Below are positions 7,366 to 54,995 of a stretch of DNA of 64,000 bases, piece after piece; within the stretch, counting starts at the first letter, position 1; every line of letters begins with the position of its first letter. The notes beneath the pieces are model-generated. The model was not told the DNA's origin. It saw nothing but the letters and a program-made list of their open reading frames with translations, and did not search any database. The position numbers and the translations under genes were made by a program. Location of the stretch: sequence record MK250021.1; one strand, 5' to 3'.

Positions 7366-9621
7366 TTAATCATCTTCTGAAACACTAATATCATAATTAA
7401 TATAATTAATACTTGCAATATCTCCAAGATAACCAACGCTATCAAACTCTTTATCGATAGTATCAACTTTATCCTATAATGATATAGAAGTAATTACTTT
7501 TGTTCCTGATGATTCATCTGTATTCTCATACGCAATGTTCTTCGCTATATGTTTAAAATACAAACCATTAACTGAATTACTATTAGGTATTGTATCATCA
7601 AGATGCGAAGTAACTCCAGACGAACTTAATGTATTATTAATAGCGATAGTTAACGCATCATCATTTACATCCTTAATTAAATCTGCAATTTCATTTGTTG
7701 ATGAAAGATTATCAGGAAATGATATAATAATAGAATTAGACCAATCTGATCTTAAAGGATTTGTTGGATAACCTGCTTCTGATATTGATCTTACTTTAAT
7801 CTCTACACGTTCACCTTTCTAGATAGGTATATCTATTTGATTAATGTTAACTTCCGTGGAATCTGCGACATTCTCAACAACCCATTTATAGCCGTTACCA
7901 TCATTTACTTTTGTCTTCATCTATGACTATGATATATTCCAATCAGAGAATGTACCTGTAACGCTTGAACCTGTATTCTAATCATTATATGTAAATGTAT
8001 TTAATAATACAGGTGTATTATCTTCTTTAACATAACGATATGCAATATCAAATCCTATAATTTCTTCTTGTAATTCAGAATTTCCTATACGTGTTTTCTA
8101 TACAGGGATAGAAAAGAAACCTCTGATTCTATATTTAGGATCTGTTAATAAGGCACCATTTGAACGAACTTCAGACTAAAACGCAGAAACATTACTTGAA
8201 TAACTAGACTATGCATTCTATAATTCCAATGTTTGTGTGTTTATTTGCTCCTGTTTCGCGTTATAATCACTGATGTTAGTAATATTCTATAACTCTGATT
8301 TTAAGTCCGCTATGGCAGATTTAAGGCTATCTATCTTTGTCTTATCATCTGCAATAAGAGCTGCTGTATTCTTAATAGTTGTTGTGTCAATTGCCGCATT
8401 AATTTGTGTGTTAACCTATACGACTCTCATATCGGATTCTGATAATGTTGGTGCATTTGGTTTCTAACCACTCCAAGCGGTAACAGTTCTCTCCTTAGCC
8501 TCATCAATCATCTTTGCACCCCAATCAACTACATAATTACTGTAATATTCAGATAATGAAGTTGTTGATACATTACCATTATTATCTTCATATAAAAGAT
8601 TATCAGTATCAACTCTAATCGGTGTTGACCATGTATCTCCTTGAAGATTATATGCTTCTGAAATACCTTTTACATATATAATATCATATTCATGTGCACC
8701 AACTCTTACAGAAATAACTTTACTTCTGAATGGATCTTCATAATAATTAAGTGTCGCATAAACACCTGGCAAAGTCGCTCCTGTAATTCTCTTTAATCTT
8801 ACCTTACTTGAATTCTGGTTAATCGCTATAATCTCAAATATTGAATCACTATATGATAACTAATCTCCAATAGATAACACATTATTTTTCCCCTAATCTA
8901 TACCTTCGTTTGATATTGTAGAATATGTTATATTATCCAATGTATACCAAACATTACCGTTAATAATATCTGGATCCTATATAATCTAGAAAATTCCTGA
9001 TTTAGTATTTCTTACTAATGGTAGTTGAACAATCTCTTCATCTTCAGAATATGAAATATTATTATTAGCTAATAATGATTTCAATGAAAGATAATCCATA
9101 CCAGATGTTATTTGATTATTATTCCACAATGTTGTAGCTGAATCATCATTAGAATTAAGAATTACCCTTACAACCTTAACTCTATCTGCATCATCTTCTA
9201 TCTAACCTGTTAAATCAATATCGACAGTTAATCCTGGAAACATTAAGTCTTCAAAGAACCAATTAGTATCTAATTTAAATGTAGATGGATCTTGTAAACC
9301 AGCAATCTATGTCGGTGTCTAAGGAATCGAGCTCAACTTAATAGTTCTTCTTGAACCATCGTTAAGATTAATTGTTCCTTTACCGGTTGAAAGTGAATTA
9401 AGCGAATCTTCAACAGCTTTCAACCTATTAACAATCGAAGCATAACTTGGTAATTGATATTTAGAATTTGTTCCCTATGTATCTTGATATTCATAAGTTA
9501 CGAATGTATCATTAGTTGTTAAAGATCTTTGCATAGCGGATAATAATGAAAGTTCATTAGTTTGCTATGCAATAGTCTTACGCATATTCTCTGCAAAACT
9601 GTTTATATTATTTGTACTCAT
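7366..9621 (-). CDS. Hypothetical structural protein, 751 aa; code 15
   Basis: ATG 9621 (MSTNNINSF) to TAA 7366 with TAG read as Gln; includes track ORF 8464-8772; central coiled coil. Confidence 0.85.
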
Positions 9622-43546: not shown

Positions 43547-43618
43547 TGGGGATTAGTATAGTGGTCAGTACAGAGGTCTCTAAAACCTTTAGGCCGAGTT
43601 CGAGTCTCGGATCCCCAA
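43547..43618 (+). tRNA. Amber suppressor tRNA (anticodon CTA), Gln-type
   Basis: TGGGGAT/ATCCCCA acceptor, loop ctCTAaa (43580-82), T arm ccgag-ttcgagt-ctcgg. Confidence 0.95.
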
Positions 43619-43660
43619 CAATTAAATGACATAAGTAATATTTTAAAGATTTGATGAATT

Positions 43661-52014: not shown

Positions 52015-52087
52015 GGTCCGTCTGGTGTAATTGGTAACATGACAGATTGTGGTTCTGTTGTTCAGGGTTCGAGCCCCTAACGTGACC
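52015..52087 (+). tRNA. tRNA-His(GTG), irregular acceptor stem
   Basis: acaga-ttGTGgt-tctgt; G-1:C73. Confidence 0.8.
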
Positions 52088-52106
52088 CAAAATATTATTA
52101 ATATTT

Positions 52107-54004: not shown

Positions 54005-54302
54005 AAGAGGTTGACTTGTATATTCTACATTACCTACTGTATAACAATATATGAGTGTACATGTGAAAAGATACACCATGTTCTATTAATATAAAAATGT
54101 ACATATATAGGGTAACAATTATATTAATATCAGATGCATGACATATATGAATATAATAACGAATTCGTGAAATGACTATTGTTTTTAGTTGCTTGGAAAC
54201 GGCGAACTTAGTTTTATCAATAGAGGAAGTATAATATTAAAACAGTTAAATGTAAATCTTTCTGAGACAATGGGGACAACTTGTAGTAAGAGAGTATTTT
54301 TA

Positions 54303-54417
54303 GCTAGTATAGTTTAGTGGCAAAACACCCAAATCCCAGGGATAAGAGATGGTTTGAGTTGTAGTGTACAATACAATATACAGAAGATTTTAGTGAGTTC
54401 GATTCTCACTGCTAGCT
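54303..54417 (+). ncRNA. tRNA-like RNA with expanded anticodon/variable region
   Basis: Acceptor gctagta/tgctagc, D arm and T arm intact; ~65 nt between D and T arms. Confidence 0.7.
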
Positions 54418-54423
54418 CAATAT

Positions 54424-54551
54424 GAAGTGCGTAGTTTAAATGGTAAAACATCCTTTGAGTAGGACTCTGACGAGAGATAGATAACAATGCTAGACTCTAT
54501 TTAATTCCATTGTTTTATTAATGAGTATAGGTTCGAATCCTATGGTACTTC
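54424..54551 (+). ncRNA. tRNA-like RNA with multi-stem insert replacing anticodon arm
   Basis: gaagtgc/gtacttc, D arm and T arm atagg-ttcgaat-cctat intact; ~76-nt insert. Confidence 0.7.
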
Positions 54552-54841
54552 CAAATTTATATAGATAAAAAGATTCTGGTGATTAGATAAAACATTATAA
54601 GAAAAGAGAAAAAACTTAGGTAACTGCAGATAACTAAGGGTCGTAAGAGTATATGAAGAAAGATGAACTATGGATACCTCCTTATAATGCGTTTTATCAA
54701 TAATTAAAGTAGTCTATAATATAAGTTCATTAACGTTATAGAAAAAACGAATATTGATAAGTCTACTATGCAGATGGGGCATTGAGAATGCCGTATAGTT
54801 CTAAAGCATCGTAAAACAGTTTATTTATATATTTTTAATAT

Positions 54842-54916
54842 GGCTAGATAGCTCAGTTCGGTTAGAGCGCGTGATTCATATCCACGAGGTCGTGTGTTCG
54901 ATCCACACTCTTGCTA
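54842..54916 (+). tRNA. tRNA-Met or Ile2 (CAT)
   Basis: ggctaga/tcttgct; loop ttCATat; T arm gtgtg-ttcgatc-cacac. Confidence 0.85.
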
Positions 54917-54995
54917 CAGTGTTTTTAGTTGTTTATTAATGATTTGAGATATATCAATTTTTGGTATATCTCTTTTTTATTTAGAAAATAATTTG

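Follow-up and report, generated by a model that had tools for sequence, protein, structure and literature searches.

Can an RNA with the body of a tRNA, and three hairpins where the anticodon arm should be, be anything other than a damaged or interrupted tRNA? This question is raised by a 128-nt gene, here called RNA B, in the genome of Prevotella phage Lak-B2 (MK250021.1). It lies on the plus strand at positions 54424..54551, counted from G-1 to the discriminator C73, of a 64,000-nucleotide stretch that was analyzed as a whole and is called the window (window position = record position minus 372000; the window is 100% identical to the record). Lak phages are ~550-kb megaphages, which read TAG as Gln (PMC6784885). 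The object is already present in a supplementary table of 2019 as an unclassified tRNA: it is listed in Lak-B at 426425-426551 as 'Undet ???' (20.2) without comment (Devoto et al. 2019, Table S2B, PMC6784885), and the copy in Lak-A as 'Pseudo TTG', both being calls of tRNAscan-SE; RNA B is not in the intron table of that study (PMC6784885). New here are the covariation-supported architecture of RNA B and the evidence that rules against its being an intron-containing tRNA or a pseudogene. With a probability of roughly 55%, we favor the view that the Lak megaphages possess in RNA B a tRNA mimic which is functional but does not decode.

RNA B combines a tRNA body with a three-hairpin insert

In a search of 501 nt, RNA B matched the Rfam tRNA family (RF00005) with 30.0 bits at 54425-54551, which corresponds to model positions 1-71. 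The gathering score of this family is 29; RNA B is not listed in the gathering search of the whole window, though it is above threshold in the shorter one. The same model gave 29.9 bits for the copy from Lak-B1, and the copy from Lak-A1 came out below E = 0.1. Between 54200 and 54700 tRNA was the sole Rfam match at E ≤ 10. ARAGORN in its default mode made no call at RNA B.

The two ends of RNA B form an acceptor helix of 8 bp, in which the 5' strand (54424..54431; G-1, A1, A2, G3, U4, G5, C6, G7) pairs with 54544..54551; the helix opens with G-1 paired to C73 (54551). CCA is not encoded after C73, where the bases are CAA. The D arm (54434..54449) has the stem GUUU/AAAC and the loop AAAUGGUA with G18 and G19, and the T arm (54527..54543) reads AUAGG / UUCGAAU / CCUAU. 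The nucleotides of the tertiary core are also present, namely U8, A14, A15:U48, G18, G19, a G at the position equivalent to 46 and the T loop UUCGAAU; an A15:U48 pair is possible as read from the sequence. The initial annotation had proposed that the elbow of a tRNA is preserved in this RNA, and the D arm with its GG, the T loop and these core nucleotides all agree with that view.

The insert measures 69 nt as compared to 15-17 nt in the tRNA model. RNA B is hence an L-shaped tRNA body in which positions 27-43 have given way to hairpins 1 and 2, then to the linker AUAGAU with hairpin 3 behind it, and finally to another linker; the three hairpins with 69-77 nt thus fill the site of a 17-nt anticodon arm, between position 26 and the variable loop. 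Hairpin 1 (54451..54464), UCCU and AGGA around the 6-nt loop UUGAGU, occupies the site at which an anticodon stem would start (54451-54454/54461-54464). Hairpin 2 (54465..54476; stem 54465-54468/54473-54476) has the form CUCU / GACG / AGAG and abuts hairpin 1 without any linker. Hairpin 3 (54483..54514; stem 54483-54489/54508-54514) consists of AACAAUG and CAUUGUU with a loop of 18 nt, in which YUAG is kept at the 5' end and an AUUAAUY-type motif (AUUUAAUUC in the window) at the 3' end. The second linker (54515..54526) ends, according to the alignment, in a conserved UAAUGA(G)U; its final nucleotides fit variable-loop positions 44-48, with G46- and U48-like bases.

The single-sequence fold energy of RNA B is not better than that of shuffled sequences (z = -0.70). 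Since this value is not significant, the sequence alone does not prove the structure, and comparative data were used instead. Two other motifs led no further. The CUGACGA of a hammerhead core occurs in hairpin 2 of Lak-B only and is not kept in the other lineages, which suggests chance, and RTAAGAGW motifs, considered as a local cluster, are not enriched in the window.

The hairpins are kept by compensatory changes across Lak lineages

Orthologues were collected from the GenBank genomes of Lak-A, Lak-B and Lak-C, from pattern scans of IMG/VR and metagenomes, and from contigs that encode relatives (61-87% identity) of a 163-aa protein just downstream. The resulting set from five Lak sub-lineages comprises 10 different sequences of RNA B and 13 of RNA A, the sister gene described below. 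The identity of the neighboring protein among the lineages with RNA B goes down to 61-63%. Pairs were counted as alignment cells on a hand-segmented alignment, because hairpins 2 and 3 of the Lak-A and L040 rows are put in the wrong place both by MAFFT and by the covariance model.

The hairpins that replace the anticodon arm are paired in nearly every cell, and compensatory changes are numerous. In hairpin 1 all 41 of 41 cells are paired, with 2 compensatory positions, and in hairpin 2 35 of 35, with compensation at all 4 stem positions, while the hairpin 2 loop is not conserved (GACG, UGCG, AUUU, UUUUA). For hairpin 3 the count is 62/70, with compensatory changes at pairs 4 and 5 from the loop and at pair 7, the base of the stem. 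The tRNA body is preserved in the same way: the T stem is paired in 50 of 50 cells (3 compensatory positions), the D stem in 40 of 40 (no compensatory changes) and the acceptor, from -1:73 to 7:66, in 72 of 80, with compensatory changes at 4:69 and 6:67 and an alternation between G.G and A-U at 7:66. The three inserted stems, tcct/agga, ctct/agag and aacaatg/cattgtt, which had been predicted from the DNA alone, are found where they were placed and are supported by covariation. Matching paired changes also occur in contigs of four independent public runs; an example is 54451 U>C together with 54464/54465, seen in run X14. In the second linker TAATGA is invariant in all 10 sequences.

The top acceptor pairs G-1:C73, A1:U72, A2:U71 and G3:C70 are invariant in 10/10 orthologues. 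This agrees with the His-type end that the initial annotation had pointed out, but the invariance of G-1:C73 and the next three pairs is partly imposed by the regular expression (GAAG...CTTCC) with which RNA B sequences were collected.

A covariance model built on this RNA (R1) scored the RNA B orthologues with 121-142 bits and found a single copy per Lak genome; RNA A was the sole relative found. All loci with RNA A also match RNA B, with the exception of L046 (Logan contig SRR20981859_68117, 2.2 kb). In this contig (~990-1030) RNA A and tRNA-Met are still present, but of RNA B only the first 5 nt are left: ~35 nt stand in place of its remainder and of ~300 nt downstream. The pattern scan of IMG/VR returned only Lak-A-like copies, and the metagenome scan contributed L024 and the truncated copy in L020/L022. 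Seven matches to a 17-mer in these scans were attributed to chance.

Because all helices are kept by compensatory change across five sub-lineages, the comparison indicates that RNA B is a selected structure, neither a chance fold nor a decaying pseudogene.

RNA A is a probable paralogue

RNA A (54303..54417, plus strand) is another tRNA-like gene, with a length of 115 nt. It matches RF00005 over the whole model with 37.5 bits and has an insert of 57 nt, as compared to the 15-17 nt of the model. It carries U73, a CCC/GGG hairpin with an 8-nt loop (AAAUCCCA) and a long arm with a variable hairpin; in the published table it is listed as 'Gly CCC' with 27.5 bits (Devoto et al. 2019, Table S2B, PMC6784885). 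Covariation is found in the acceptor, the T stem and the middle hairpin; the inner hairpin of the long arm covaries and is nearly deleted in L040. As had been noticed from the DNA, RNA A and RNA B are separated by a spacer of 6 nt (54418-54423, CAATAT) and share the D stem GTTT/AAAC; the latter is present in none of 31 other Lak-B1 tRNAs inspected. RNA A is a probable paralogue of RNA B and always adjoins it.

The 8-nt loop of RNA A reads AAAUC[C/U/A]CA or AAAUCCAA and lies inside a 27-nt block that is otherwise invariant. Within the loop (54331-54338) the middle nucleotides alone vary, with CCC, CUC, CAC and CCA being found (L024, L039, L020/L022 and run X8). Such variation within conserved flanks, in RNA A as in RNA B, could reflect relaxed constraint or diversifying selection.

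A separate observation concerns L022 (ERZ808277 NODE-18, 140 kb), a contig from another tRNA-rich phage, which is unrelated to Lak. On its reverse strand, at ~8880-8927, and likewise in L020, only the 5' half of an RNA-A-like gene is present. This half comprises the 5' strand of the acceptor, the D arm, the CCC-loop-GGG hairpin and AUAAGAGAU, and 44 of 48 positions are identical to the Lak copy. An RNA-A-like 3' half was not found within the 12-kb locus.

A probable non-decoding tRNA mimic

What could such an RNA do? An anticodon arm of a tRNA has 5 bp and a 7-nt loop with U33; hairpin 1 of RNA B has 4-5 bp and a 6-nt loop. In close relatives this loop reads UUGAGU, UUGAAU, UUGAUU or UUAGAU, and the acceptor end is unchanged. 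Because hairpin 1 is short and its 6-nt loop changes between close relatives, RNA B should be unable to read codons. From the wrong geometry and the unstable 'anticodon' we infer a role outside decoding.

Bacterial HisRS recognizes its tRNA mainly by G-1:C73, a pair that also shifts the RNase P cut one position earlier. RNA B has this tRNA-His element and does not have the GUG anticodon. Its likeness to tRNA-His extends over the acceptor, which G-1:C73 lengthens to 8 bp, the D arm, the T arm and the tertiary core, and the loop of hairpin 1, UUGAGU, is reminiscent of UUGUGGU, the loop in the tRNA-His that the phage itself encodes. It differs in that RNA B has no 5-bp/7-nt anticodon arm and no GUG and contains two hairpins more. 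In the tRNA-His (GUG) of the phage, at 52015-52088, the Rfam tRNA match is limited to model positions 8-63 (32.2 bits), and pairing of the acceptor strands by eye requires one bulged U.

A plausible life of RNA B would begin with a long transcript. The only convincing intrinsic terminator downstream of RNA A and RNA B, a 12-bp stem with a T tract on the plus strand (54946..54982, in another delimitation 54946-54972), lies after tRNA-Met. Because there is no other strong terminator downstream, RNA A, RNA B, the 290-nt stretch that follows and tRNA-Met probably form one precursor, which would be transcribed up to 54946. Host RNase P would then release RNA B with G-1 retained, as in bacterial tRNA-His, and 3' nucleases would trim the other end. 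CCA could be added by the host enzyme or by the phage's own enzyme of the CCA-adding family; the Lak genomes encode a ~425-aa protein of the CCA-adding enzyme / poly(A) polymerase family (PF01743, 80-84 bits; MK250020.1 320205-320594 and MK250015.1 397198-397587). The tRNA body may serve in processing, in stability and in recognition by proteins that read the acceptor end or the elbow. Because the G-1:C73 end is invariant, HisRS or a factor that targets tRNA-His would be the most likely partner. Speculatively, RNA B could act as a decoy or sponge for a host factor that binds or cleaves tRNAs; alternatively, and equally speculatively, it could be a tRNA-scaffolded carrier that presents the hairpin module.

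Several points weigh against this interpretation. The D arm of RNA B is nearer to that of RNA A than to that of any tRNA-His, and the 'His-type' end may be an 8-bp helix unlinked to histidine. HisRS is absent from the Lak phage and Ro60 (TROVE) from the Lak genomes, and the neighboring genes (portal, C1 protease, GrpE, glucosaminidase, WYL_2 and tape-measure-like) suggest no partner. A role as decoy or scaffold is plausible but speculative. The RNA B locus was in none of the RNA runs searched, and the contigs from DNA runs gave variants only. Unless contig L046 is misassembled, RNA B is dispensable at least in some settings. Finally, the hairpins had to be aligned by hand, since the automatic methods misplace two of them, and the diversity amounts to five fairly close lineages, all of them Lak.

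A broader version of this interpretation would assign RNA A and RNA B to a new class, phage RNAs on a tRNA chassis: matured, possibly aminoacylated (RNA B with His), non-decoding, and used as decoys, which soak up a synthetase or host immunity factors directed at tRNAs, such as anticodon-loop nucleases. This proposal is tentative, and we would rather expect it to fail in this full form. If it were true, the fast-changing loop nucleotides (UUGA[G/A/U]U in hairpin 1 of RNA B and the variable loop of RNA A) would record an arms race, and an RNA-based counter-measure would join the contest between bacteria and phages over tRNAs.

RNA B is maintained by selection in phages that are the largest of the human and animal gut, and it offers a convenient system in which to learn how tRNA mimics act when a phage infects, whether as decoy, as scaffold, as signal for processing or as ligand of a synthetase. 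It also illustrates that 'Undet' or 'Pseudo' calls of tRNA finders in huge-phage genomes can conceal real structured RNAs.

Alternative explanations

The main rival to a functional mimic is processing punctuation. RNA A and RNA B would be kept only as RNase P and RNase Z signals, which free the flanking RNAs, namely a 140-nt element upstream and the 290-nt structured RNA downstream, and the hairpin module would be functionless. tRNA-like punctuation of this kind occurs in mitochondria and in MALAT1/mascRNA. The setting at the Lak locus is suitable: the two RNAs sit among conserved non-coding elements in one probable transcription unit, the upstream element stops 5 nt short of RNA A, and L046 has lost RNA B and the downstream RNA together. 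However, punctuation needs an acceptor, a T arm and an elbow only, yet hairpins 1-3 are compensated as well (138/146 cells paired), and the motifs AUAGAU, UAAUGA and YUAG...AUUAAUC in linkers and loops are also conserved. Furthermore, the ordinary tRNAs of the island could do the same job. On balance we consider it unlikely that RNA B is punctuation and nothing else.

Much less probable is a tRNA pseudogene, which was disrupted by insertions and is in the process of being lost. The automatic calls ('Undet', 'Pseudo') would fit such a gene, as would a fold energy like that of shuffled sequences, the natural deletion in L046 and the truncated RNA-A-like 5' half in the unrelated 140-kb phage contig. 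A decaying gene would, however, hardly keep more than 30 base pairs by means of ~15 compensatory substitutions in five lineages in which the flanking protein has 61-87% identity, and the nucleotides of the tertiary core are intact in RNA B.

The third possibility is an ordinary tRNA with one or more introns, which would make up the 55-60 extra nucleotides and be spliced out by the host or by an unknown pathway. Precedents exist in the same phages. Devoto et al. described 'enigmatic introns' in Lak genes for Tyr(GTA), Phe(GAA), Thr(TGT) and Gly(TCC) with canonical exons (PMC6784885), in the form of 79-114-nt inserts at 37/38 in Lak-A1 and Lak-A2 (PMC6784885 Table S6). These genes are, like RNA B, oversized and unclassifiable by bacterial tRNA finders. 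In a relaxed intron mode ARAGORN indeed offers a tRNA-Lys(UUU) with a 55-nt intron for RNA B, and also a tRNA-Gly(CCC) with a 22-nt intron; both were rejected because of mismatched anticodon stems. The Lys model contains three non-Watson-Crick positions in this stem and places the intron at 33/34. An equally poor model, tRNA-Leu(CAG) for the L040 copy of RNA A, was rejected too.

The exons themselves argue against splicing. We scanned every split point in each RNA B orthologue for a single insertion: no orthologue reaches more than 3-4 of the 5 anticodon-stem pairs with its best excision (mean 2.9), and RNA A reaches at most 2 of 5. The initial annotation had named an ordinary tRNA made by splicing as an outcome that would overturn its proposal, and in silico this outcome fails, as no single excision yields an arm of 5 bp and 7 nt. 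As far as can be judged from these scans, RNA B cannot become an ordinary tRNA. The would-be anticodon also varies between close relatives. The published Lak introns look different: in all entries of Table S6 a short hairpin comes first and is followed by an acceptor-like stem and a T arm of the GGTTCGAATCC type (PMC6784885). These introns look like nested tRNA-like elements, i.e. canonical tRNAs plus a T-arm-like minihelix, whereas RNA B is without canonical exons and its insert has no internal T loop.

A group I intron in a tRNA has a P3-P8 core and usually at least 200 nt; with 69-77 nt and no Intron_gpI match at E ≤ 10 the insert is too short for one, as had been suspected. A bulge-helix-bulge at homologous positions across the lineages was not found, by a scan that is without power in this AT-rich sequence, as 294 of 300 shuffles also score. 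A search of two complete phage genomes, Lak-B1 and Lak-A1, found neither splicing endonuclease (PF01974) nor RtcB (PF01139), while the controls scored. RtcB does occur in the host phylum, where Bacteroides thetaiotaomicron scored as a control. A search of Lak with T4 Rnl1 was uninformative, since the controls were silent. We consider an intron-containing tRNA slightly less probable still than a pseudogene.

The weakest alternative, an unorthodox decoding tRNA that is charged (e.g. with His) and uses a non-standard loop for recoding or frameshifting, could invoke the TAG=Gln code and the suppressor tRNAs of the phage (PMC6784885), the RNA A loop, which keeps U-CCC-A like tRNA-Gly and has 8 nt like +1 frameshift suppressors, and a further tRNA with an 8-nt UUUU loop in Lak-B1, but it can be set aside as the least probable of all: hairpin 1 with its 6-nt loop is mostly 1 bp short of an anticodon stem and has the wrong geometry for the ribosomal A site, its 'anticodon' would point to Leu, Phe, Ile or Ser codons in close relatives with the same acceptor, and two extra hairpins crowd the junction.

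Comparison with known tRNA-like RNAs

Phage tRNA clusters are a long-known source of stable RNAs with no assigned purpose. The closest phage analogues of RNA A and RNA B are T4 rnaD (species 2, 119 nt) and rnaC (species 1, 139 nt). They are arranged in tandem, 6 nt apart, at the end of a tRNA cluster, just as RNA A and RNA B (115 and 128 nt) are 6 nt apart. Features of tRNAs are visible in both: rnaC contains a perfect T arm (CCGGGUUCGAAUCCCGG) together with an acceptor-like strand on the 3' side, and rnaD terminates in CCA. They are still called RNAs of unknown function (PMC9697503). There is no homology between rnaC and RNA B, as R1 scores rnaC with 14.2 bits, which is under the scores of real T4 tRNAs. 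The T4 RNAs also fall short of RF00005, which RNA B reaches, and in rnaC the resemblance to a tRNA is confined to the 3' two-thirds, which follow a 5' extension, while in RNA B it spans the entire gene and includes a full D arm. The T4 RNAs are stable RNAs, and RNA B is likened to them by position and size. With its full tRNA body, His-type end and conserved three-hairpin module, RNA B is the cleaner case.

Class II tRNAs (Leu, Ser, Tyr, Sec) also have extra helices between the anticodon arm and the T arm. Those in the same genomes, which account for the other oversized Lak tRNAs (96-101 nt), have a normal anticodon arm and one variable hairpin, whereas RNA B has two extra hairpins and the first arm is truncated. 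Bacterial tRNA-Sec shares with RNA B an 8-bp acceptor and a 5-bp T stem; RNA B differs in a D stem of 4 bp, not 6, in the lack of UCA and in giving no RF01852 match.

The initial annotation had compared RNA B with bacterial Y RNAs and the tRNA-like domain of tmRNA. In concept the comparison holds, in that elbow and acceptor are kept and the anticodon part is replaced; membership in either family does not. The ends of the Y RNA YrlA form a Ro-binding stem, while those of RNA B form an acceptor helix, and there is no Rfam Y RNA match in 54200-54700. In tmRNA the tRNA-like domain, which lacks a genuine D stem, is attached to an mRNA-like region with a tag frame and to pseudoknots, whereas RNA B has a D stem; RF00023 (tmRNA) has no match in 54200-54700, and the tmRNA of the phage lies elsewhere. 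A man-made counterpart also exists: Ponchon and Dardel reportedly engineered, in 2007, a 'tRNA scaffold' for the expression of recombinant RNAs, in which a foreign structured RNA replaces the anticodon stem-loop and the chimera is processed and stabilized by the tRNA machinery of the cell. In RNA B the corresponding arrangement is natural.

Genomic context and neighboring elements

RNA B is located in a 3.3-kb island nearly devoid of reading frames (51.7-55.0 kb of the window), which contains the genes for tRNA-His, tRNA-Pro, two tRNA-Arg, two tRNA-Gly, tRNA-Cys and tRNA-Met. The last of these (CAU; 54842..54917, plus strand), identified by ARAGORN and Rfam, is the final gene ahead of the terminator. 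Upstream of the island are the phage tmRNA (45475-45884; Rfam 47.3 bits, barely over the gathering score) and a CUA (amber) suppressor tRNA (43547-43619); both are consistent with the recoding of TAG to Gln.

The non-coding stretch between RNA B and tRNA-Met (54553..54841, plus strand) is conserved in all Lak lineages. In this stretch 13 predicted pairs are changed on both sides, and one hairpin has a conserved loop (AUAACUGCAGAUAA). It belongs to no Rfam family and is probably, judging from these paired changes, another structured RNA.

On the other side, a ~140-nt non-coding element (54160-54298, plus strand) comes to within 5 nt of RNA A; its final 52 nt do not differ between Lak-A and Lak-B. 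It has no Rfam match, and its variation is too low for a test of structure. The element recurs in an unrelated crAss-like phage, cr130_1 (L015, NC_055901.1 ~1112-1247), with 85% identity over 147 nt, and this copy is also located upstream of a tRNA, namely tRNA-Gln.

A last observation concerns the tRNAs of Lak-B1. One of them (L076; MK250020.1 201405-201478, minus strand), labeled tRNA-???(tttt) by ARAGORN, has an anticodon loop of 8 nt (AUUUUUAA). It could be a four-base decoder or a frameshift suppressor.

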